NCBI RefSeq assembly: GCF_006345805.1
Contig: NC_043006.1
Location: 67,642,001-67,706,000 of the forward strand
Source: Octopus sinensis
Taxonomy: Eukaryota
Length of the DNA stretch: 64,000 bases
Direction of reading: 5' to 3'
The notes under the pieces are model-generated. The model made no database searches and was not told where the DNA came from. It saw nothing but the letters and a program-made list of their open reading frames with translations. Position numbers and translations under genes: made by a program. Shown here in pieces: positions 11,721 to 50,800 of this stretch (positions are counted from its first letter, which is position 1; the number at the start of each line of letters is the position of its first letter).

Positions 11721-12162
11721 TTAACTTTTTAGCATTTAAATCAGCTATATCCAGCTGAAATGTTTTTGTTCAAAATGGTTAGATCTGACCTCTCTCACCA
11801 GCCCTACATTGTCATTCTAGAAATAAATTATCAAATCATCAAAATTTCAAAGCTATGAGATAATGTATAATATAATTAACCCTTTAGCATTTAAACTGGC
11901 CATATCTGGCTCAAATATTTACCTGTTGTATTGTCAAAGTGGACAGATCCAGCCTCTCACACTTACCTTACAATGTCATTTTAAAAATAAACAATCACAT
12001 CATTGAAATTTCAAAACTGAGATAATACATGATTAATCCAAAGCAGTGGGAATCGATAAGCATATTTGATTTAATTAATCTGAATGCTAAAGGATTAATT
12101 CAAAACAATGGGAATAAATAAGCATTATGTTTGACAGGATAATCTGAATGTTTAAGGGTTAA
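11721..12162 (+). mobile_element. piggyBac-type (TTAA) MITE with a second copy of itself nested at 11880-12094
   Basis: Outer ends TTAActttttagcattt / aatgtttaagggTTAA. Inner ends TTAAccctttagcattt / aatgctaaaggaTTAA. The same family is unnested at 49591-49817. Confidence 0.85.
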
Positions 12163-12973
12163 ACATTTGGGGTTTTGGTGGCAGGGATGAGCAGGTGAGT
12201 ACCCCACCCTCATCCAATATAAATCACTTTTGTTGCTAGACAGACTGAAAGTTTTGGATTGTTTTCACTCAATGAACGTTGGAAAACCTAAAAATTTACA
12301 TATATTCTAATTAATTAGTAATAATTATTTCAAGTTTTTCCACAAGGGCAGCTTGGGGGAGGTGGGGATGAGTTGATTACATCAACCCCAGTGTCCCACT
12401 GGTACTTATTTTATTGACCCCGAAAGGATGAAAGGCAAAGTCGACCTCAGTGGAATTTGAACTCAGAACGACAGGCAAAATACTGCTAAGCATTTCATCC
12501 AGGGTGCTAACAATTCTACCAGCTTGCCACCTTTGATTAATTAGTAATAATAATTAGTTAGGTACGAATATGAATGTGATTAAGAAGTATCCTCAATGCG
12601 TAGCTTCTTAAGCAAGTGTTTCTACTATAGTTCCAGGCCAAACAAATCCTCATGAGTGGATTTGATAAAAAGAAACTGAAAGAAGCCTGTTTTATATCAT
12701 CATCATTTTAATGTCCAATTTTCCATGCTTGCAATAGGGCAGACAGAATTTTTTGAAGTAGATTTTTCTACACCTGGATGCCCTTCCTGCTGCCAACCTT
12801 CACTGGTTTCTAAGCAAGGTAATATTTCCTCATGATTAGATATGTCTCTCACAGAAGACTGGAAACCAACAAATTCACTTGTACAATAGTCAAACTCATT
12901 TACAATCATCACATGATGTCAAGACAAGGCTACACACACGTGTGTGTATGTATGTGTGTGTGTATATATATAC

Positions 12974-13180
12974 TTTATTAAAAAACAGCAAAAATATCAC
13001 AAAAACTGTTACTCAGAGTTTCACGTTCCTGTTCATCCAAACTGTCCAACGAACGGGAAGATGAAACTCTGAGTAACAGTTTTTGTGATATTTTTGCTGC
13101 TTTTTAATAAAGCATATTACTCTACCTCTGGTATTCCAGTACTATTTTTTCCACCTTGTTTCACATTTTTCTTACTCTGG
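12974..13180 (+). mobile_element. Fold-back element (~50-60 bp arms) with degenerate minimal hammerheads, probable Penelope-like terminus
   Basis: 12974-13023 is the reverse complement of 13062-13111, and the element is flanked by TA/TG microsatellites. A related inverted fragment lies at about 36747-36835. Confidence 0.7.
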
Positions 13181-20980: not shown

Positions 20981-23900
20981 TTAAGGGCTAGCATGACTGT
21001 GTGGCTAGGAAACTTGCTTTTTAACCAATTCCACTGTGTGAATCTTGCATTATCTCATGATTTTGAGATTTTGATGATGTGAATGTTTAGTTTTAGAACA
21101 ACAGGCCTAAGAGGCCAGATCTGGCTGGTTTAAACATAAGCAGTAGAATATTTGGGTTAGATACGTTTGGTTTATATGCTAAAGGATTAAACCACCACTT
21201 GGCACCTTAGGTGACTTTGGAACCTTCCCTGTTACCAGTATTTGGATCTGGTTCCTGATTTGAGGATACCTTCCTCTGTCTCCCACCCACTAGTCTCAGA
21301 AGCCCTGTAAAGGGTTATGAATCCTGCTTTCCCTCTCAAATGAAACTGGACTTAATATTTTAGGAAAACAATTTGTATGTTTTTTTAGTTAGCTAGATTC
21401 TTAATGTGAACTCATGTGTTGAAATATATTTTGTTCTCTCTTGGGAGGATCATTATGCCAATATAAACACAGGCACTGGTTTTATTTCACTTCTTTATTT
21501 TTATTAGTTATTTGGTTAACTATTTGAGCAATTGTTCAGTCAATCAATTAGATTTGTCAAAATCCTTTCTTTGCCATTTGCAATTTCATCAATGACACAC
21601 CTCTACTCCAGGTCAGCCTTCAGATTGATATGAAAATAAGATAAGGATATTTGTTTTCAAGGGTAAAAAAAAAAAAAAACCCCTGAAAAAGGTTGGGCAA
21701 AATCAAGCAGACAGACTTCTCCAGATATTTTTGTACTGTATCTAGGACTATATATTCCACATTTGCCTTTTAAAATAGTAGGGTGTGATTTGATTGATGT
21801 ATGGCTACTATTTCTAGTAGATTAGTGACCAGGTACAAGTTCTCTCATTATGTAACCTCTTTGTGCGTGTAAATGCAAATTTCATGTTGATAAAAATGGA
21901 GATTTTGTGCATTTGCATGCATCACCATCATCATTTGACATATATTTTCCTGGCTGATATGCATATCAAAACAAAAACTGGCACAAATTTGGTGCATTAT
22001 ATATAATCTAAAAAAAAGACAATTTAGAAAACAAACAATATTGAAACTTGAAACAGTATTAAACAAAAAATAAAATGTAAATAAAAAAAGCTAGATTTGA
22101 TATGATAATTTTTGCTTTCTTCCTTTCATTTGACATCTTTTTTCCCTATACTTAAGGCAGGATTTTTCTTAACAGATACCTTTCTTTGCCACCAACCTTT
22201 TAACTATTTTTTAGATGGGGGATATTTTTTTTATTCTATAGGGATTTGAAAATGCACCGCTAAAGGGCAGCAGCTGCAGTGATGTCATCACCTATAGCAG
22301 AAGCTTACCATATATTGTAAACATTCACACACATACGCTAATAGATGCAGACCTAGCTGTGTGGTTTCATGTTCAGTCCTACTGTGTGGCACCTTGGGCA
22401 AATGTCTCTTACATATAGCCTCAAACTAATCAAAACCTTGTCAATAAATTTGGTAAACAGAAACTGAAGGAAGCCTATCGTATGCGTGTATATGTGCATA
22501 TTTATTTGCATGTGTGTTTGTATGTATTTATATCTTCCTCCTAACATCATGTAATTGTTGTCTATGAATGCCATTCATTTTTGATATTCTGTGAAAACAT
22601 TTCGGGCCATAGGGTAATATTACCTAGATGGGTTGGTAACAGGAAGAAAATCTGCTTTAATAAATTGTCTGACCCATGCAGGCATGGAAAAGTAAAAGTT
22701 AGTGATATTTTGTACACACATATACATACACTTCTTTTAGTTTCTGTTTAACAAATTGTCTCACAGGGTATTGGTCAGATGGAGCTATAATAAAAGACAC
22801 TTGCTATATTTCTAATTAACTTATATTAAAATTGGAAATTATGAAATTTTACTTTGAGCCAAAATTTTTAGTTTTACTTAGTAAAGCTACATAAGCATCT
22901 TTACTATAATGAAGAAAGCTACTTATTAGTTAGCTATAAGTTTTTTATTAAAAGAAAGCAATTATTTAAATCTACATTGTGTAGAAAATTCTTTAGAAGG
23001 TCCTAATTTTTATATTTTTATCAAAATGTGATTTTTGAGATCTTTTATTGAAGATGTCAATAAACAAATTTTAATTCATTTTGAGATAGGTTTTTTTTTT
23101 CTTGTAAATTTTACCCTGAGATGGTCATAAAAATAAAGAAGTTTGCTGGTGATTACGGATATACAAAAGAAGGTTCCAAACATGGGCCTGCTGACCCATG
23201 AGTGTCAACATGTTTCAGACTATAAGAAATGCTGTAAAAGAGATGGAATGATTGTAAATTAAATTTGCATTTTATTACTCTTTCAGCTCCTCATTAGAAA
23301 TGAGCCTTGTCATAGTTGTAGTGTAACTCCACCCTGCTCAATGTCATTTATGTTACTGGCGTTGACCCAGTTTTCTTTTTATTTCTTTAAGAAGACATGC
23401 AAATAAAACAAAGATACAATTCAGGTTGTCTTTCATTAGAAAATGATACTCTTTTTGTTTTTCAATTGAGATATCACTCTGGTCTACTAAATAGGGGTCA
23501 GTGTGTATGTAGGAGTAAGCATGGCGGTGAGGATGTCGACAAGATTATTTTTGAACATTAGACATACATAAGTCTGTTCTGTGTGTGTAGGTGTACAGGT
23601 GAATGATTGTGTGTGTGTGACTGAATATCACCAACACCAAATAGATTTTCTTTAAAAATTTTGTTAACATTTCCTTGAATGTGTGTCTGTCTGTGGTGGT
23701 GGTGGTGGTGCATGTTGTTTAACCTTGGATCAATCTTGATTGAGAAGACTTATGATTAAGGGTGTTTTGGCCTTGACCAATGTTGTTTTGGGGCATATTT
23801 ATATGACCAAATACAGGTGTGATTTGAGAAAGATTTAGTGAAGGCAGTGGTTGTTATTTAACCATAAGAGCAGACCTGTGATCAAGCTGTAATTATTCTG

Positions 23901-34735: not shown

Positions 34736-35005
34736 ATATAAATACAGTGTACATTTAAACACATAAGAGGCATCCATCATAGGACTCCTTGCACGCTAGA
34801 GAGAACAGTTAAATTCCAAACCACTATTAGGGATAAAATTTTTAAGGGAATGAAAAATAAAAGTTAGATGGTAAATGTTTTTATTTTTCATTCCTTTCGA
34901 AATTTTATCCCTAATTGTGGTTTGGAATTTAACTGTTCTCTCTAGCGTGCAAGGAGTCCTATGATGGATGCCTCTTATGTGTTTAAATGTACACTGTATT
35001 TATAT
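34736..35005. repeat. Near-perfect ~125-bp-arm hairpin with 16-nt loop
   Basis: 34736-34862 vs 34879-35005; about 4 mismatches, all near the loop. Confidence 0.95.
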
Positions 35006-37057: not shown

Positions 37058-39606
37058 TGTGTGAGAGAGAATCGTGATGTGGTAGGAGAGAAGTGTGTTC
37101 GCATGGATGATGGTTCACTTGCGCTAAATGAGGATGCAAAGAGAGAGGTTTGGAGATGCCACTATGAAAGGTTGCTGAATAAAGAAAATGAATGGGATAA
37201 AGAGAGTCTGCCGAATGTTGACCCAACAGAGGGACCAGCTATCCGAGTTGATAGTTCCGTGGTAGCTAAGGCAATTAGAAGCATGAAGACAGGGAAAGCC
37301 CCAGGCCCATCAGGAATTACTGCAGAGATGCTCAAAATATCTGGCAGTGTCGGCTATAACCTAGTCACCCATATAGTCAACCAGGTGATACACGAAGGAG
37401 TCATACCCAATGACTGGTGTAGCAGCATACTAGTCAACTGCTACAAAGGTAAAGGTGATGCCCTAGATACAAATAATTACAGAGGTATCAAGCTGTTGGA
37501 TCAAGTAATGAAGGTTACGGAGAGGGTCATAGCCCAACTAATTAGAGAGAGAGTTAGTTTAGATGAGATGCAGTTTGGGTTCGTGCAAGGGAAAAGTACC
37601 ACAGATGCTATATTCCTGGTAAGGCAGCTGCAGGAGAAATACCTAGCCAAAGATAAGCCCCTGTACCTGGCTTTTGTTGACATGGAGAAAGCTTTTGATA
37701 GGGTCCCCCGATCCCTTATCTGGTGGTCAATGAGGAAACTAGGGATAGATGAATGGCTGGTGAGGACTGTGCAAGCCATGTACAGAGATGCCATAAGTAA
37801 GGTTAGGGTTAGCAACATGTACACAGAAGAATTCAAAGTAGAGGTTGGGGTCCACCAGGGTTCAGTACTCAGCCCCCTCCTATTTATCATAGTCCTACAG
37901 GCAATTACGGAGGAATTCAAGACAGGTTGTCCCTGGGAGCTCCTCTACGCTGACGACCTTGCTCTTATTGCTGAGTCACTATCAGAGCTGGAGGAGAAGT
38001 TCCAGGTGTGGAAGGAGGGTTTAGAATCGAGGGGCCTTAGAGTCAACCTAGCTAAAACCAAAGTACTAATAAGTAGGAAGGTAGACAATCCACAAATGTC
38101 TTCAGGAAGATGGCCCTGCTCGATCTGTAGAAAAGGTGTAGGTAGAAACTCTATAAGATGTACCCAGTGTAAGCTATGGACACATAAGAGGTGCAGCAAT
38201 GTCAAAGGTAGGCTAACTGGGAAGATAGTTTTTGTATGTGGCAGATGCTCAGGAGCATTAACCTCCGAAAATCTGCAGAAAATAACTTCAGTCACTTAAC
38301 AAGGGGAAAAACTAGAAGTAGTTGATAGCTTCCGTTATCTAGGTGACCAAGTCAGTAGTGGGGGTGGGTGCGCTGAAAGTGTAACTGCTAGAATAAGAAT
38401 AGCCTGGGCAAAGTTTAGGGAGCTCTTACCTCTGCTGGTGACTAAAGGCCTCTCGCTCAGAGTAAAAGGCAGACTGTATGATGCGTGTGTACGAACAGCC
38501 ATGCTACATGGCAGTGAAACATGGGCCGTGACTGCCAAGGACATGCGTAAGCTCATGAGGAATGAAGCCAGTATGCTCCGATGGATGTGTAATGTCAGTG
38601 TACATACTCGACAGAGCGTTAGCACCTTGAGAGAAATGTTGTACCTAAGAGGCATCAGTTGTGGTGTGCAAGAGAGACGATTGCGCTGGTATGGTCATGT
38701 GGCGAGAATGGATGAAGATAGGTGTGTGAGAAAGTGCCAATCCTTAGCAGTTGAGGGAACCCGTGGAAGAGGTAGACCCAGGAAAACCTGGGACGAGGTG
38801 GTGAAGCACGACCTTCGAACTTTAGGCCTCACTGAGGAAATGACCAGCGACCGAGACCTTTGGAAATATTCTGTACGTGAGAAGACCAGGCAGGACAAGT
38901 GAGCCCAGCCCACTTATGAATGCCTTTCCTCCCTTGGACACAAAGACCTGTTGAGGCAAGCGAAGTCGATATAGAACCTCATCCGACGACAGGCACCCAT
39001 GCCAACCCCCTTTGCTTGCGAAGACATGTTGGGGCAAGCGAAATCGAAATCGAAGTCAAAATCGAATTGAACCAGCCAGGATCCCTGGTCTGGTGGTACG
39101 TAAAAAGCACTATCCGACTCGTGGCCGATGCCAGCGCCGCCTCCACTGGCTTCCGTGCCGGTGGCACGTAAAATACACCAATCTGACCGTACGACAGGCA
39201 CCCATGCCAACCCCCTTGCTTGCGAAGACATGTTGGGGCAAGCGAAATCGAAATCGAATTGAACCAGCCAGGATCCCTGGTCTGGTGGTACGTAAAAAGC
39301 ACCATCCGACTCATGGCCGATGCCAGCACCGCCTCGTCTGGCTTCCGTGCCGGTGGCACATAAAATACACCAATCCGACCGTGGCCGTTGCCAGCCTTGC
39401 CTGGCACCTGTGCAGGTGGCACGTAAAAAGCACCCACTACACTCACGGAGTGGTTGGCGTTAGGAAGGGCATCCAGCTGTAGAAACACTGCCAGATAAGA
39501 CTGGAGCCTGGTGCAGCCTTCTGGCTTCCCAGATCCCCGGTTGAACCGTCCAACCCATGCTAGCATGGAGAACGGACGTTAAACGATGATGATGATGATG
39601 ATGATG
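37058..39606 (+). mobile_element. 5'-truncated RTE-clade LINE: RT ORF 37061-38902 with one in-frame TAA (38297-99), 3' UTR and (GAT)n tail
   Basis: Motifs NYRGIKLL, AFVDMEKAFD, GVHQGSVLSPLLF, LLYADDL, then VDSFRYLG after the stop, in the same frame as ORF 38438-38902 (offset 1377 = 459 codons). No endonuclease domain is present. Confidence 0.96.
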
Positions 39607-39960
39607 ATATCATCATCATCGTCGTTTAATGCCTGTTTTCCATGCTGGCATAGGTTGGATGGTTTGACTGAGGTCTGGAGAGCCAGCGGCTGCACCAGGC
39701 TCCAATCTGATCTGACAATGTTTCTACAGCTGGCTGCCCTTCCTAACACCAACTATTCCTCGAGAGTAGTGTGTGCTTTTTACGTGCCACTGGCACGGGC
39801 CAGTCACTGGGTACTGGCATCAGCCATGTTTGGATGGCGCTTTTTACGTGCCATCAGCACAGGACCCAGTCAGAGGGCACTGGCCACAGCTACGATATTG
39901 GTTCTACTTGACTCAACAGGTCTTCTCAAGCATATCATATCACCTGATGCATCAGGAGTA
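39607..39960 (-). mobile_element. RTE 3'-end copy tail-to-tail with the preceding LINE; other RTE 3' ends at about 8810, 15400, 17710, 19480, 27917, 28530, 31690, 40635, 41330, 49330, 54843, 56330
   Basis: (CAT)nCGTTTAA...CCATGCT.GCAT.GGTTGGA...TTTCTACAGCTGG.TGCCCTTCCTAA signature, identical to the LINE's 3' end. Confidence 0.9.
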
Positions 39961-40164
39961 CTCTTAACACTTGATATATATATATATATGTATATACACA
40001 GCAAATTCAGAAATCATTCTAGGGCAGTTACTAATTTAGTTTAGTTGAATTTTAACTCCCAAAAGAGCTTAATAAAGATTTATTACCATGCAATTATAAA
40101 TAGTTCGGGCCTGTGACACTTATATAGGGATGTGTGTGTGTGTGTCTGCCAGTTCCATGTAGGG

Positions 40165-40634
40165 AGCACCTGTTGCACCTGAGAAGCACCTGTGCTGGTG
40201 CCGCCTGGGAAGCACCCATGCCGGTGCCGCCTGGGAAGCACCCGTGCCGGTGCCGCCTGGGAAGCACTCGTGCCGGTGTCGCCTGGGAAGCACCCGTGCC
40301 GGTGCCGCCTGGGAAGCACCCGTGCCGGTGCCGCCTGGGAAGCACCCGTGCCGGTGCCGCCTGGGAAGCACCCGTGCCGGTGCCGCCTGGGAAGCACCCG
40401 TGCCGGTGCCGCCTGGGAAGCACCCGTGCCGGTGCCGCCTGGGAAGCACCCGTCCCGGTGCCGCCTGGGAAGCACCCGTCCCGGTGCCGTCTGGGAAGCA
40501 CCCGTGCCAGTGCCGTCTGGGAAGCACCCGTGCCAGTGCCGTCTGGGAAGCACCCGTGCCAGTGCCGTCTGGGAAGCACCCGTGCCAGTGCCGCCTGAGA
40601 AGCACCCATGCCGGTACCGCCTGAGAAGCACCCA
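40165..40634. repeat. GC-rich 26-bp minisatellite, about 18 copies (GCACCCGTGCCGGTGCCGCCTGGGAA)
   Basis: Directly visible. The non-triplet period explains the rotating ORFs in all six frames. Confidence 0.97.
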
Positions 40635-41986
40635 GCACACTTAGTAAAGTGATTGGCATTAGGAAGGGCATTCAACCATAGAAACCAAACCAAATCAGTC
40701 TGGAACCTGGTGCAGTTCTGGCCAAACTGTCCAACCCATGCCAGTATGGACGTTAAATTATGAAGATGATGATGTATATTATTTTATGTATGTCAAGATA
40801 TAATAAAAACAACTTGACATTAAACTGAAGAGTTACTCAATACTTTTTAGTAAAGTACATATTTATTATACTTTTACAAGTAGAGGCACAAGTGTAAATG
40901 TGTCTGTGGAGTGCTCAGCCACTTGCACGTTAATTTCACAAGCAAGCTGTTCAATTGATTGGATCAGTTGGAACCCTCGTTGTCGCTGTAACCGGAGTGC
41001 CACAATACCTTTACAAGAAGCAGGGTGACAGTGACTTCAAAGTTTCAGCTTGTTGGACAGGCTGCTCTGCAAAGGCTGTAGCAGACTTTAAACCCTGAAG
41101 CCACTGTCACCCCTCTTTTTGTCGAAGTATAACATATATATATAGTGAGAATTTACAAAAAAAGCAAAAGACGAAGACAGGTGTGTAAACAACAAACAGA
41201 TGTATTAATTTAACGCTTGGGAAGTGAGAAAGTCTTTTATATTTCAAGTCTATGCTCTTCAAAACACAGAAACAGGGAGAGAAAATAGAAAAAGGTTTAC
41301 TGGCTAGCAATGTATCATATATATATATGACTGGCACTGTGCTGGTGGCACATGAAAAGCACCATTCGAGTGTGGTTGATACCAGTGCCACCTGATTGGT
41401 CACATGCTGGTGGCACATAAAAAGCACCATTCAAGTGTGGTCATTGCCAGTGCCGCCTGACTGGCTCCCAGTCCAGTGGCACATAAAAAGCACCCACTAT
41501 ACCCTCAGAGTGGTTGGCATTAGGAAGGGCATCCAGCTGATTAAACTTTGCCAGATCAGCTGTATAAACCTTGCCTGGTGCAGCCTCCTGGCTTGAAAGT
41601 CCTCAGTCAAACCGTCCAACCCATGCCAGAATGGAAAGCGGACGTTAAACAACGATGACGATATAGAAATGAATGAATTTGAGGTTATCTAGATAAATGT
41701 GTGTTGGGGGTTAGAAGTTTTGGGATGAAATTATATTTAGTAGTCTTCTGTATAGGGAGGTGGGAGAGTGGGTGGAGGTCAAGTATTGTAGGTTGTTAGG
41801 TGTTGATAAGGAAAGTTGTTAGGTACTTCCGCTGAGATTCATAGCTGTTATCTGTGCTGAGAAGGGGGGGAGTCATGCGTGCACGCGTGTGTGTGTGTGT
41901 GAATATTTGCACTGGTTTGAACACAAAAGAGCTACTCCATCTTTTACACACCCATCATTCCTGCAGATTCACTGATGCAGTTGTAC

Positions 41987-42278
41987 ATAACCCTTTTGGA
42001 ACTGACCTGCCTGTCTCAGGCAGGTCAGTTCCAAAAGGGTTATGTACAACTGGAAGGTTTTTTTTTTAAGTTTGTATCATTGAACCGGTGGCAGTCTCTG
42101 CCACCGGTTCAATGATACAAACTTAAAAAAAAAACCTTCCATTAAAATTTCGTGTTAATTTATGTCTCAAATCACAGCTTAGTAGTGACAGTTATTTTAC
42201 TAAATTCATCATTATTTTTTAAAGATTGACACAATGCCAGCATAATTCCACTGAAATATGGTAACAAAAGGCTTAACG
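41987..42278 (+). mobile_element. piggyBac-type MITE (second family) carrying a double-hairpin rearrangement; intact relative at 48839-49036
   Basis: Ends TAACCCTTTTG.. / ..GGTAACAAAAGGCTTAA. The internal motif GTTATTTTACTAAATTC is shared with 48839-49036, which has TTAACCCTTT / AAAGGGTTAA ends. Confidence 0.75.
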
Positions 42279-42377
42279 CATACAAACTCATATTCATTTG
42301 TACAGATTCTTATGTATACAACTGCATATGCTTGCAACTATGTGTATATACATCCATTTAAATACTTACATATATAC

Positions 42378-42740
42378 TCTCTCTTTCTCACTCTCGCTTT
42401 TTCTCTCTCCCTTTCTCTCTCTCTTGCTTTCTCTCTCTCCCCCTTTCTCTCTCTCCCCCTTTCTCTCTCTCTCGCTTTCTCTCTCTCTCGCTTTCTCTCT
42501 CTCGCTTTCTCTCTCTCCCTTTCTCTCTTTCCCTTTCTCTCTTTCCCATTCTCTCTCTCCCTTTCTCTCTTTCTCTCTCTCCCTTTCTCTCTCTCCCTCT
42601 TTCTCTCTCTCTCTCTCTCTCTTCCTTTCTCTTTCTCACTCTCTCTTTCTCACTCTCTCTCTTTCTCACTCTCTCTCTTTCTCACTTTTTCTTTCTTACT
42701 CTCTCTCCTCCTCCCCCTTCCCCTCTCTCCCTCTCCCAGA
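42378..42740. repeat. ~360-bp polypyrimidine (CT)n/(CTTT) tract
   Basis: Almost purely C/T on the + strand. Confidence 0.95.
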
Positions 42741-43946
42741 CACACGTGTGTAGTTAAATATGCACATGCTTAGACATGCACACATCTACCTACCATACAA
42801 GGACACACACACTATATGCACATGGCTAAATACATGCATACCCATGTACCATACATACAAACACACACACACACACCACACACACACACGGTCATGAATT
42901 CTTACCTTCAGAAGTATTATTATTCCACTTCTCAGCTGAGACTGTATCTTGAGGTACTAGGTTCAAATTCTCCTTGGGAGTGGTTGAATGGTTGTTCTCT
43001 CTCAGAACATGACTTCAGAGCACCTCCCTCAAAGTACCAGTAATGTGCTACAACAGATTGTGTCAGCTATGTTCCTTGCCTTCTGAGGAAATTATTGTGG
43101 TGGTTTTGTTTGAGCTCTTTACATTCTGAGTTCAAATCTCACTGAAGTCAGCCTGGCTTTTCATCCTTTCTGTGGTTGATTAAATAAAGTACTGTTCCAG
43201 CATTGGGTTAATTACCTCTTCCTTCTTCTCCACACAAATTTCTAACTTTGTATCTTTGTTACAAATTATTATTATTATTATTATTATTGATGTTGTTGCT
43301 GCAGTGGATGGCAGAAATAGCAAGCAGAATGAGTTAAATTCTTTGCAATGCTTAATTACATTTGAGTTCAAATCCACCTGAAGTTGACTTTGTATTTCAT
43401 CTTTATGTGAGGACTATAAAATAAGTCATGTGCTGCGGGTCAGTTGTTACTTCACTGTTCCCAAAGTTTCCCCCCAGATTTTCCCCCTTTTGCCCTTGTT
43501 AAAGCAAAGCAGAAATGAGTAAACACCAGGTGACATATTCTCTCCTTAGATCTGCTGGCTCTGACATCAGTAACGATAAGGTAGAGAAGGATGAGGAGGA
43601 TAGAAAAAGAATATCAGAAGTTGTTGTCTAAGGCCCAAGTCAACCCTGTATGAAACAGACTTATGGCAGTATCATTCCAGATGTGACCACCATGTCTGAT
43701 TGCATATCTATGACTACATTATCCATCATCTTTTTTTGTTTTTCTTTTTAAGAGTGTATAGTGTGCTTTGAGGGTAAGTTGACTGCTATTTCTAGAAGAT
43801 CAGGCTACCATGTAAAGGCTGCCCCCTTTGGTTCAGGTTCCATTCTGGGCACTGGTGTTCACTTGCATCTTCATGAGAAGTCCGTCCATTGGAGATTTAA
43901 ATATGTTAGCAAAAATAAACAGACCTTTAGATTTGTATCTCCACCC

Positions 43947-43982
<36 letters not shown>

Positions 43983-45981
43983 TAGCCATTTGCAATTATA
44001 CATGCACTCACACATATGCACTCACTCACTCACAAGCACATGCACACACTCTAAAATATAATCTTCTACACAGATGCATCCAGATACATATATACACATA
44101 CATACAATCCCTAACCTTCACACACACATACATAATTACATCGTTATGTGTTGTTGGAAGATTGCCAATATATAAGATTAATTAAATCAGCCCATTGTAG
44201 CATCAGACAATAACATACACTCGCATAAGCAAATATACACATACATATACATATATACACATACATATATACACATACATATACACACATACATATACAC
44301 ACATGCATACTTAGAGACACGCCCACAAAATTAAAAAAAAAAGAAGAAAGCAATAAAATCATGATAATCAGGTACCCTAATATCAGATACAGTAGGGTAT
44401 TAAACTGAGTACTTTGAAGCATTTAGTTATCCTGAAGTCCTGGGTTCAAATCTTGCCTTGGTCAATTTCAACAGTTTTGTCTTTCTGGGGTTGATGAAAT
44501 ATATGTACTGGTTTCTATATCAATGCACTACACCACCACCCCTACCTCCACTTCCTGCAAAATTTGAGGCCTTGTGGGTAATTTTAGAAATAACAAGGTA
44601 TGGCTGTATGGTTAAGAATCTCACTTTGTAACATGGTCTCCACTGCATTGCACCTTGGGCCAAGTATCTTCTAGTATATATAGCTCCACGCTGACCATTG
44701 CCTTCAGTGAATTTGGTAAATAGAAACTGTACGGTAGCCTTGTCATGTATGTATGTGTGTATCTTTTTGTGCCTGTATTCCCCCACCCCCCTGCTTGGTA
44801 ACCAGTGTTGTGCACAAGTCCAGGCAAGGTTGTTTTGTGGCAGACCAGCAGTTACCCACACATACTAAACTGACCTCTCTGCATCACTGATGTTGTCCAA
44901 GGAAAGGCAAAGGCCAATATAGCTTGGCATCAGTGACATTGCAACTCAATTCTACAGCTGAGTGAATTGGAGCAACATGAAATGGCCTCCAGACAGAATA
45001 AACCATGATCCTCAGACAGAAGGAACCTCCCTGTTGTTGTTTAGCCCCAGGTCATCCTCGATCTTATAAGCCTATGATCAGATGTGACTATTCCATTACA
45101 TAGTGTAGGCAGGACTAGGTGCAGGCATGGCTGTGTGGTTAAGAGGCTTGCTTCCCAACCATTTGGTCTTGAGTTCTGTCTCACTTCATGACACCTTGGT
45201 CATGTGTCTTCTTTATGGCCTTGGCCCAATGAAAGTCTTACGAGTGGCTTTTTAAGAGGGAAACTGAAAGAAGCTTGTCATTTTATATATACAGCGGGGT
45301 ATCACAAAAGGCCCGGTTGGAGGCCCAAACCCTCTGAGTTCTTTTATATGGCTTAGAAAAAACTGAAGAACCGCTGCAATAAGTGTATGAATCTGAGAGA
45401 GGAATATGTTGAATAAAATAATTAACTGATCCTTCTTAACTACACAGCCATGCCTTATTATTTCTAAAATTACTCATAGGGCCTCAAATTTTGCAGGAAG
45501 TCCGGGTAGGAGGCAGTGCAATGGATTGATGTAGACTCCAGCACATATTTCATCAACCCCAGAAAGACAAAAGTAATCTGATTTGAGGGCGATGTGGTTG
45601 CTATTTCCAGCATGCTGAGCAACATTTAGAGGCTCCTTTGGAGATGAGAGTGAAGTAGTCACTTAGATTACAAAGTGCAACAGTCACTCTTGAATTATGT
45701 GTCTGATATGGTAGGTTGTTATTGACACTTTGCACTTGCAGTGTCTTGTTCAACACTTACCACCACCACAGCCACAGCCTAAATTTTAACAGGTTATATT
45801 TATCCTACAAGGCTGTAACTGCAGTTAGCAGAAGTCCCTGGAGGGGAAATAACAGATGTTCATGTATAGGATGTGGTGTAAGAAAAAAAAACTGTTTGTT
45901 ACTGCTACAGTGTTTTATAAAAGGAGGCATTAATGTCACAACTTCCTGATTATTTCTGGTGTGATTATATAGGTAGTGCAT

Positions 45982-46110
<129 letters not shown>

Positions 46111-47899: not shown

Positions 47900-50800
47900 T
47901 ACCATTTTCCCATCCCCATTACTACCCAATCACACAATCCGCACTAACCAGGCTGTTATGTCTAGCCCCAGGCCAGCTCTGCTCAGACTAGTGATTAAGT
48001 GCATCCTTACCATTAATATTGCCGTCTTTTATTTAGACACAGTATATCTAGGACTCTTTTACCCAATGTCTGTTGCCTTTTTGTTTTGCTACAACTCGGC
48101 TATGTCTATCCTGTCTCATGTGCAGGGACTACATTAAATCATTTTTTTTTTGTTTTTGTAAGATAGTAAGATGTGGTTAATGCAGATCTGCCTGTTACAT
48201 TACAGTGGCTTCGTCATTGATAGGATGTAATTAAATGGGAGATATGGCTGTTAGAAGATAAAAACTCTGTCAGTGACTTATTTAATATGACCTGTGTCAA
48301 GCCAGGTAACAGAATTTATCTTCTACTTCCAACAAACAATTCCTGCAAGTCTGGCTGCTAATACTTTGTCTGTACCACTCCAACCTTTTTTCTTTTCTTT
48401 TCTTTACCACCATGAACCAGTTTCATGCAAGGTTATTTTTCCATGGAGTGGGCGATCATGTGCATAATAAAGCACAATAAAGTATATATTTATTACTTAT
48501 ATAATATATTTATTACTTATATAATACATATTACATACACACACGCATGTAATGCAAAAATACCCTGCAAACTGTGATAGTCAAAAGAATAGAAATATAA
48601 TTCTAAAATGTATTCTTTCTGTGCGATCCTGTGGTTGGTAACCCCCTACTATAAGTAACTCCAGTCCACCTGGCGTATTGCCCAAAGTTTTGTCAACCAT
48701 GACGTTCTAACAGAGATTTTACTGAATGTTTATGGTACCACTCTTTGGAGAGATTATACAGCATTGTGCTCCACTTCCACACAGCTTTAATGCCCAATGT
48801 CTTGTCTAATGAGCTACTTCCTTGACCTCCACAAGCTATTAACCCTTTCGTTACCAACTCGGCTCTGGCTCTGAGTACAAATGTCTTGTTTTCATAAGTT
48901 TTGAATTAAAATCTTCCACCAAACCTTAGTCACAATTTATGTTCCTAACACTAGCTGAATGATAACTAAGTTATTTTACTAAATTCTTTGTTATATTTAA
49001 AGTAATTGAAAGAAATACAGAGCATCTCCAAATAAATACAGTGAAGAAAGGGTTAATGAGTCACTCGGTGGTGTATGCATGTATGTAGTGTGTATAATTC
49101 AGGTAAATTTAGTATCTATAAATATATATACATTTCCGAAACTTGGAAATATATGCACATGAAAATATACACATGCATTAAAAACATACACTCACCCACA
49201 TGTATCACATACACCTTTGGATCTCAACAGGGTCCATGTAAGATTTTATTGTTACAAGTTATGTGCAATTGATTGGTTATACCTCTACTATACTCAAAAT
49301 AGGTCATTAGTTAATTGTATTATTCCCTATGATGTTTAATTGGTGGCACATAAAAAGCACCAACCGATCGTGGCTGTTTCCAGCCTCCTCTGGCCCCTGT
49401 GCCAGTGGCATGTAAAAAGCATCCACTACACTCACAGAGTGGTTGGCGTTAGGACGAGCATCCAGCTGTAGAAACACTGCCAGATCAGACTGGAGCCTGG
49501 AGCAGCCTCCTGGCTTCCCAGACTCTGGTCGAACTAGCATGGAAAACGGATGTTAAACGATGATGATGATGAAGGTATAATAGGATTTTTTTAACCCTTT
49601 AGTATTTAAACCGGCCATATCCGGCCAAAATATTTAATCTGTTTTATGTTCAAACTGACCAGATCCAGGCTCTCACACCTACCCTACAATGTTATTCTAC
49701 ATTAAGTAGTTACACCATCAAGATCTTGAAGATATGGGATAATGCATGATCAATTCAAGTCAATGTGAATCAATAGGCATTATGTTTGATTGAATAATCT
49801 GAACACTAAAGGATTAAACATTGAATGGTTATGAGGGTTCACCCAAGTAAAATAGGAACCATAGGTAAAAAGGGTTCAGAATCACTGAGCCATACACTAG
49901 TAACACAGATAGCAACATAAACATATATACCATACATGTCAATGCACACACATTCACATACATATGTGTAAATAGTCAAATATTTACACATGCACACATA
50001 TTAGTTGTGTGTGTGTATCGCATATCAATGTAAGACATACAGATATGTACACACAGAAACACATGTATGTAAACGCCCAATTAATGTGTACACATGTATG
50101 TACATATATAACACCTCAATACAGACACGTACACAAGTGTGTACCTACACACACGCACATGTACACACAAATACACAGGTACATCGGCATGAACACACAT
50201 ACACACATGCGTATTCACCAACCCGCACACTCATGCACATACACAAACGCACACATGGCACCAATGACTCAGTGAGAGATGAGTGGACACTTAATGGACG
50301 GAAATGGTTCACGACATCCTTTACAGTTGCCTAGGTGACGCATGTAAGGTCATCTGCACTGGTTAGGTCTCTGAACATAGAGATCCCAAGTTCAATATCT
50401 CTTCACAGCAGTGTGACAACATCCATAAGGAAGTCACACTTTGTATATAACAAGGTTTCTTCCTAGTGCTGTTTCCTCTTGTATCGGAAGGTCGTGTGTA
50501 TACTGGTTTGTAAACCAATATGTATAAATTATATAATAATGTATATATATATATATATATATCTTTCTACTTGTTTCAGTCTTAGACCATGACCATGCTG
50601 GGGCAACACCATAAAAAATACTTAATCAAATGAATGAACCCCAGTACTTTTTTTACTTGTTCTGTTGACTCTTTTGCTGAACCACTAAGTTATAGGAACA
50701 TAAACACACCAACACCTGTTGCCAAGCAGTGGTGGTGGATCATACACGTGCATGCACACACGACAGGCTTCTTTAGTTTCCGTCTACCAAATTCACTCAC

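Follow-up and report, generated by a model that had tools for sequence, protein, structure and literature searches.

Two abutting perfect hairpins with a common TCT loop in an old piggyBac-like miniature transposon of Octopus sinensis, most likely a mutational scar

The double hairpin and its host element

The stretch of DNA analysed here (the window) comprises 64 kb of Octopus sinensis contig NC_043006.1 (positions 67,642,001 to 67,706,000, forward strand) and is repeat-rich and eukaryotic. An intergenic or intronic region of the window carries two abutting perfect hairpins with the same TCT loop (the double hairpin), which straddle the left end of a miniature inverted-repeat transposable element (MITE). 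In 5' to 3' order the structure reads A-TCT-A'-B'-TCT-B. The sequence basis for the double hairpin was the assembled consensus of the window, and the coordinates of all features, counted from the first letter of the window, are specified in Table 1.

Table 1. Features of the double hairpin, of the host MITE and its relatives, and of the surrounding window (RT, reverse transcriptase; ORF, open reading frame; LINE and SINE, long and short interspersed nuclear element)
Feature	Position	Strand	Details
Arm A	41978-42013	+	36 nt; original DNA, template for A'
Loop 1, TCT	42014-42016	+	with its neighbours, GTCTC at 42013-42017
Arm A'	42017-42052	+	exact reverse complement of A, non-MITE flank included
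TG overlap	42051-42052	+	end of A' and start of B'; 2-nt microhomology at the central join
Arm B'	42051-42094	+	exact reverse complement of B; its T10 run pairs with the A10 run of B
Loop 2, TCT	42095-42097	+	with its neighbours, the second GTCTC, 42094-42098
Arm B	42098-42141	+	44 nt; original MITE interior, template for B'
Net insertion, if the ancestor was A-TCT-B	42017-42097 (equivalently 42014-42094)	+	81 bp; flanked by the 5-bp direct repeat GTCTC
Host MITE, old, piggyBac-like	41991-42272	+	termini CCCTTTTGGAAC...GTAACAAAAGGC; 282 bp with the insert, 201 bp without
Copy 2 of the host MITE family	48839-49056	+	210 bp between intact TTAA duplications; ~69% identical; outgroup for the ancestral state
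Sister MITE family	11876-12162 and 49591-49817		TTAA-flanked, TTAACCCTTTAG ends; end motif also at 21181-21190
LINE-type RT ORF, intact-looking	37061-38299	+	RVT_1, E = 4.5e-32; weak PHD finger
Second ORF after the LINE RT ORF	38438-38902	+	
SINE pair, tail to tail	39407-39799		~190-nt arms, meeting in (GAT)n/(ATC)n at ~39600; best arm segment 87% complementary
Tandem array, 26-bp G+C-rich unit CCTGGGAAGCACCCGTGCCGGTGCCG	40178-40633		17.5 copies, 95% matches; long spurious ORFs on both strands
(GT)n tract	~41886-41905		left of the double hairpin
CT-rich 14/16-bp tandem array	42377-42707		~22 copies, 79-83% matches; 100 bp right of the MITE
Palindrome, 16-nt spacer	34736-35005		127-nt arms, 97%
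Palindrome, 16-nt spacer	12968-13117		67-nt arms, 93%

Complementarity was 100% in both arm pairs (A/A' and B/B'), with 0 mismatches in the 80 paired positions. The axis of symmetry of each hairpin fell on the C of TCT, and the T/T on either side of it were unpaired. The hairpins and their common loop had been proposed in an earlier reading of the same letters (the sequence-only reading) and were confirmed in the assembled sequence, with coordinates within one base of those proposed. The arm lengths given there (36 and 43 nt) were right for the first hairpin; the second, at 42051-42141, has arms of 44 nt, and the single G that the two hairpins were said to share was replaced by the 2-nt TG overlap of Table 1. 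Arm A had been described as the left end of the MITE plus about 10 bp of flank, and this agrees with its composition: 9 nt of unique flank (41978-41986), the sequence ATAA, a decayed TTAA duplication (41987-41990), and the first 23 nt of the MITE. Arm B, which had been said to continue into the MITE body, does lie inside the element.

The single-stranded DNA fold of positions 41968-42151 consisted of exactly two hairpins (-93.4 kcal/mol). Shuffled versions of the same segment folded at -17.8 +/- 2.8 kcal/mol, giving z = -27 for the double hairpin. When the whole window was scanned for perfect hairpins (arms of at least 14 nt, loops of 0-12 nt), these two were the only ones, (TA)n microsatellites aside. 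No further copy of arm A or arm B was present in the window with up to 3 mismatches allowed, and the shuffled sequences gave 0 matches. The motif GTCTC, found at both loops, occurs 69 times in the window, which is the chance level. As a whole, the double hairpin is far beyond chance.

TTAA duplications and CCC...GGG termini are established hallmarks of the piggyBac superfamily, and the host element was assigned to an old piggyBac-like MITE because both are found on this short non-coding element. Its flanking duplications are the decayed ATAA (41987-41990) and TTAA (42273-42276), and its terminal inverted repeats are CCCTTTTGGAAC and GCCTTTTGTTAC, the inverted ends being ~12 bp long. When searched by blastn and by an nhmmer profile, the window yielded copy 2 as the only further copy (~69% identity), with the termini CCCTTTCGTTAC...GTGAAGAAAGGG and the terminal inverted repeats CCCTTTCGTTAC and CCCTTTCTTCAC. 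The sister family follows the pattern TTAACCCTTTAG.ATTTAAAC.GGCCATATC.GGC ... CTAAAGGATTAA, and its copy at 11876 has the right end twice (12089-12098 and 12154-12162). A subterminal direct repeat, CTGGCY, is common to the sister family and the host MITE, and the second unit of this repeat contains the break point of the double hairpin. No Pfam matches were obtained among the ORFs across the hairpin region, exact look-up of the four ORFs over or around the structure in public assemblies returned no record, and no homologue of the 71-aa ORF spanning hairpin 1 was returned at the protein level. An 18-mer conserved between both MITE copies was looked up in metagenome, prokaryote-genome and viral contigs: 153 loci were obtained, all of them seed-only chance matches.

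Templated origin of the inserted bases

The observed 244 nt (the structure with 40-nt flanks) were modelled as an ancestor prefix, k reverse-complement segments and an ancestor suffix, and all ancestors with A-B spacers of 0-6 nt were enumerated (n = 5461). An origin from one segment (k = 1) was permitted by 0 of the 5461 spacers. With two segments (k = 2) and without untemplated bases, 8 spacers were permitted, and microhomology at all three joins (1/2/1 nt) was obtained with the TCT and AGA spacers only. Under either of these two, 0 untemplated bases were needed, and all inserted bases were the reverse complement of junction-adjacent sequence. An insert made solely from reverse-complement copies of the leftward flank (36 bp) and the rightward flank (44 bp) explains the whole structure, and two inverted templated segments are required.

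Because A' repeats non-MITE flank, the copying was later than the insertion of the MITE. Subtracting the 81-bp insert leaves an element of 201 bp (copy 2 has 210 bp); A and B would accordingly have been adjacent, or nearly so, in the ancestor, making A', B' and one TCT the extra parts. Two claims of the sequence-only reading are upheld here: that A' and B' are inverted copies of the immediate flanks, which the non-MITE flank within A' supports, and that a multi-step template switch is involved, which is the right class, given that one segment is impossible and two suffice.

Three simulated routes reproduced the sequence exactly: two-ended snap-back from A-TCT-B (all 244 observed nt); a single nascent strand making three switches from A-AGA-B, with overlaps of 1/2/1 nt; and duplication of A-TCT-B in tandem (81 bp), after which the central B-A block was inverted in place. 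Two other candidates were rejected. A single four-point template-switch mutation has no one-segment solution, and its type 3-1-4-2 yields interleaved, not adjacent, repeats. An inverted triplication (X X' X), as produced by origin-dependent inverted-repeat amplification (ODIRA), would not contain each flank twice only, and the observed order, A' then B', is the reverse of the contiguous B' x' A'.

For the ancestral triplet, comparison was made with one 69%-identical copy (copy 2) and two sister-family copies. Global alignment to copy 2 scored 61.5 with TCT, 60 with no spacer and 58.5 with AGA. When masked as NNN (MAFFT), the triplet was placed under TGG, TAT and TAT in the three relatives, and agreement with these was 5/9 bases for TCT and 1/9 for AGA. 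The triplet result is alignment-dependent: with AGA entered instead, the gap moves and CCTGAGAC is aligned with TCTGAGTAC of copy 2. From A-TCT-B, no base is lost and the change is a pure 81-bp insertion flanked by GTCTC; from A-AGA-B, three bases are lost. The alignments would thus lean towards A-TCT-B over A-AGA-B as the ancestor, and parsimony would favour it. The sequence-only reading had proposed A-AGA-B: its contiguity of A and B is supported by the element lengths, while AGA is just one of two equally templated options.

Fold-back at a break and the competing explanations

The double hairpin is most likely a mutational scar, left in an old transposon relic by a single faulty repair or replication event. 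At the level of the wider class, this event was probably one of serial microhomology-primed template switching. A specific version, in which both ends of a staggered break folded back from A-TCT-B, is put forward tentatively, its chances being a little below even.

In this specific version, the ancestor inside the old piggyBac-like MITE would have read ...CCTG TCT CTGCC..., and a break with a 5-nt 3'-overhang stagger would have left the same five bases on both 3' ends (top strand GTCTC, bottom strand GAGAC). Each 3' end would have folded back, its terminal C pairing with the G four bases upstream around a 3-nt loop. The left end would then have been extended by 35 nt on its own flank, giving A', and the right end by 43 nt on its own flank, giving B on the bottom strand, or B' as the top strand reads. 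The extended tails would have unwound and annealed by their last two bases (TG/CA), prior to fill-in and ligation. The net product would be an 81-bp insertion with two abutting perfect hairpins and a common TCT loop. Alternatively, each 5-nt overhang may have been ligated to its own recessed 5' end, forming a closed hairpin with a 3-nt loop, and nicking of the 5'-terminated strand at 36 or 44 nt from the tip would have led to the same product. Hairpin ligation with a nick 5' of the loop was rejected: it predicts the loops TCT and AGA, and only a nick 3' of each loop gives the sequence.

The duplication of GTCTC at both loops is as expected if both ends kept the same overhang. At yeast breaks with 3' overhangs, local fold-back gives inverted insertions of 2 to ~150 bp, for which Pol delta and end joining are needed (PMC11724301). 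For POLQ repair, one-base-pair priming has been described, as has snap-back synthesis with reverse-complement inserts (PMC5068794; PMC4912351), and Pol theta switches between cis and trans templated synthesis (PMC4912351). At the published error rate of POLQ inserts (~1 per 30 nt), the probability of 0 errors in 76 nt is ~0.08, so an accurate polymerase is the likelier one: an error-free copy is more readily expected of Pol delta, for example, than of Pol theta. Polymerase-theta end joining specifically is a poor match in insert length and accuracy, short (~10 bp) and error-prone inserts being expected from it and 76-81 nt without error being found here. We infer four points: that a double-strand break, and not a stalled fork, started the event, that the ends were staggered, that the ancestral triplet was TCT, and which polymerase acted.

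Several points weigh against two-ended fold-back. Published fold-back insertions are one-ended and mostly <35 bp, whereas here both ends and 35-43 nt would be involved; a 1-bp primer with a 3-nt loop is very weak; and the 5-nt 3' stagger is an assumption. Mre11 is reported to cut hairpins with loops of up to ~8 nt, which disfavours such intermediates (PMC11724301). The AGA ancestor with a fork-based path matches the sequence equally well, and the error-free 76 nt would be only ~0.08 probable if Pol theta were the polymerase. In a related account, which is quite improbable, GTCTC would be a true target-site duplication: an enzyme would have nicked the strands 5 nt apart, and both 3'-OH ends would have been extended by snap-back. 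Aborted target-primed reverse transcription (LINE endonuclease/RT) and the excision site of a lost element are the candidate sources of the nicks, with the same slight chance. If this account were true, the locus would preserve the natural trace of an 'empty' retrotransposition or excision event whose repair proceeded by fold-back synthesis at both ends, and it would also amount to a fresh pair of perfect RNA hairpins of 36 and 44 bp.

Of the competing explanations, serial template switching at a stalled fork, of the kind described as fork stalling and template switching (FoSTeS) or break-induced replication mediated by microhomology (MMBIR), needs no two-ended break; it is possible, if on the unlikely side. 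The nascent strand would depart at the A/B boundary, make a U-turn onto the opposite parental strand or onto itself and copy A backwards; it would then jump via TG/CA to the far end of B, copy B backwards to the departure point and resume the original template. With A-AGA-B, both inverted runs would cross the complement of GAGAC and the forward AGA would be lost; with A-TCT-B, GTCTC would be re-copied. The exact three-switch simulation from A-AGA-B (overlaps 1/2/1 nt) speaks for this path, as does the pairing of CCTGAGAC with TCTGAGTAC of copy 2 once AGA is typed in. A return to the departure point is natural for a fork, and accurate replicative synthesis suits the error-free arms. Short template-switch mutations that make perfect inverted repeats are well documented (PMC5453318), as are iterative template switches (PMC11293582, PMC8421209). 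On the other hand, no four-point event type gives the layout (3-1-4-2 gives the interleaved P Q' S' P' Q), so three switches within 83 bp are needed, and the AGA ancestor entails a 3-nt loss and a slightly worse score against the relatives. The fork path with three switches and the break model cannot be told apart by sequence alone. An assembly or sequencing artefact, in which fold-back or chimeric molecules from library preparation or read processing entered the consensus, is improbable. Long-read fold-backs usually comprise whole reads, not 36-44 nt. Such artefacts arise molecule by molecule and would not be expected to win the consensus, nothing similar is found elsewhere in the 64 kb, and the three joins carry the 1/2/1-nt microhomology pattern of a templated polymerase event. 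In its favour, a copying artefact would likewise give perfect arms, equal 10-nt homopolymers included, and fold-back or inverted-repeat artefacts are described both in long reads and in short-read libraries made by enzymatic fragmentation (PMC6941819, PMC10908179, PMC12870357). An adapter or transposase-end origin of the join CTGTCTCT was rejected: although similar to the beginning of a transposase adapter end, this 8-mer is present 6 times in the window, at chance level.

A stepwise origin from two ordinary events is also quite improbable, somewhat more so than an artefact. It could take the form of a tandem duplication (with CA microhomology) plus in-place inversion, or of two separate single template switches. 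Duplication followed by in-place inversion does reproduce the sequence exactly, in-place inversion is the commonest four-point event type (45%; PMC5453318), and forks stalled at a first hairpin could have led to the second event. However, two rare events would have to fall on the same nucleotides, with the same loop and no intervening point mutation in 160 bp, and no intermediate was seen. The re-integrated micro-circle of the sequence-only reading, in which the 81-82-bp A-AGA-B segment is excised or copied, circularised via CA, opened at AGA and re-inserted inverted at its own centre, has a very small chance. It is formally valid under AGA: inverting the segment, permuting it circularly and adding 3 nt yields TCT-A'-B'-TCT, and A begins, and B ends, with CA. 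It adds steps that have no support: the donor must be kept, a duplex circle of ~81 bp is very stiff, and linearisation and insertion must both fall exactly at the same triplet. It is also indistinguishable from plain template switching, and it fails under the TCT ancestor, where the loops would read AGA. An equally small chance is given to a selected or element-borne structure, namely part of a repeat family, a hairpin-RNA or microRNA precursor, an RNA-editing substrate or a protein-binding cruciform. The 36- and 44-bp stems are long enough for a double-stranded-RNA enzyme, and template-switch events can create RNA hairpins and microRNA genes, according to two reports (PMC8794818; bioRxiv 10.1101/2023.04.19.537475). 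Against it, no Rfam covariance model matched at gathering score in 38000-46000 on either strand, and the window holds no second copy. Because arm A includes ordinary flank, the double hairpin stands outside the MITE consensus, and there is no sign of a function. The least likely account of all, with a negligible chance, is that of covalent hairpin ends made at excision by a hairpin-forming transposase or RAG-like enzyme (hAT, Transib) and opened off-centre. A 5-bp duplication is the target-site size of Transib and RAG, and hairpin opening gives palindromic P-type additions. This candidate was rejected on its predicted product, a loop-less even palindrome (...GTCTC|GAGAC...), the observed axis lying on the C of TCT with T/T unpaired. 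The hairpin-capped break ends of the sequence-only reading thus stay viable as fold-back or ligated 3-nt-loop hairpins and are excluded in their transposase or RAG-type form.

Setting, consequences and known systems

Identity to the LINE RT ORF reaches only 78% in the best public homologue (P0037) and at most 62% in the rest. P0037 carries the label of a Herbaspirillum metagenome-assembled genome protein, probably because animal DNA was binned with a bacterial genome. The LINE RT lies 4 kb from the double hairpin and is of relevance to the target-primed reverse transcription candidate. The palindrome at 39407-39799 was rejected as a product of the process that made the double hairpin, and consists of two diverged SINE copies instead; more copies of the same SINE are found up to 41662, just left of the double hairpin. 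The CT-rich array and the (GT)n tract, being polypurine/polypyrimidine or Z-prone, could stall replication near the site. The palindromes at 34736-35005 and 12968-13117 differ in sequence and could be either MITEs of the fold-back type or the older outcome of inverted copying.

The sequence-only reading had suggested that the structure can extrude as a double cruciform. This is possible on paper, but the hairpin centres are G+C-rich (15/23 and 17/23), and such centres slow the extrusion of cruciforms from a duplex. More realistic are hairpins on single strands, which, as predicted by the fold, would be very stable on single-stranded DNA or on a transcript. With zero mismatches, either the event is young (at most ~2% divergence, far younger than the MITE) or the arms have been kept identical by intra-strand switching.

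If real, the double hairpin is an unusually legible footprint, in which each base of the 81-bp insertion can be assigned to its template, and its layout shows at least two inverted copying runs, one per flank, at a single place. One event could then turn non-palindromic DNA into two long perfect hairpins, which is of relevance to local fragility and to how hairpin RNAs originate. Its weight is limited, being that of a single putative instance, apparently function-less.

In comparison with piggyBac-superfamily MITEs, the host element has the TTAA duplications, the CCC...GGG termini, the inverted ends of ~12 bp and a length of ~200 bp. Unlike such elements, the double hairpin includes flank DNA and is absent from copy 2, and its break point lies 23-26 nt inside the element end, away from a transposase cleavage site.

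The double hairpin belongs to a known class, that of complex templated insertions or fold-back scars, with an unusually clean architecture. In the local fold-back insertions of yeast (Yu et al. 2024, PMC11724301), a resected 3' end likewise folds back at an inverted microhomology close by, copies its own flank, unwinds and is joined to the other end by non-homologous or alternative end joining. There, one end primes and the other only captures, whereas here both would fold back and join; priming in yeast is on a 10-bp imperfect repeat with a 41-nt loop, against 1 bp and a 3-nt loop here. Pol-theta snap-back, or synthesis-dependent microhomology-mediated end joining (PMC5068794, PMC4912351, PMC5728401, PMC2943611), also produces reverse-complement inserts from within a few bases of the break, with one-base-pair priming, repeated rounds of priming, extension and dissociation, and short microhomology at the final join. 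Its inserts are typically ~7-10 bp long with ~1 error per 30 nt, involve one flank in 16/17 complex cases, and are a minor class in C. elegans where they arise by snap-back; here, 76 error-free nt, both flanks and no deletion were found.

Fold-back inversions and ODIRA (PMC10622511, PMC7467729, PMC10766183) resemble the double hairpin in the U-turn at a short inverted repeat, which leads to hairpin-capped DNA with a short unpaired centre. They differ in extent, with runs of kilobases to megabases that give chromosome-scale palindromes or inverted triplications (X X' X). At the present locus, synthesis ended after ~40 nt per side, each flank is present in two copies instead of three, and an inverted triplication would have the two inverted pieces in the opposite order. 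The four-point model (Loytynoja & Goldman 2017, PMC5453318) similarly has perfect inverted repeats or hairpins arise in one step, when synthesis switches locally to the complementary strand, and it includes a type with two inverted repeats, the interleaved P Q' S' P' Q. One excursion in that model gives one contiguous reverse-complement fragment, whereas three switches in a six-point event are needed for A x A' B' x B. Two abutting hairpins, one per flank and with the same loop, are outside both the four-point model and the published one-ended fold-back insertions, and since the layout exceeds these models, a class with both flanks inverted and abutting hairpins would, if the locus is real, be worth adding to genome scans.

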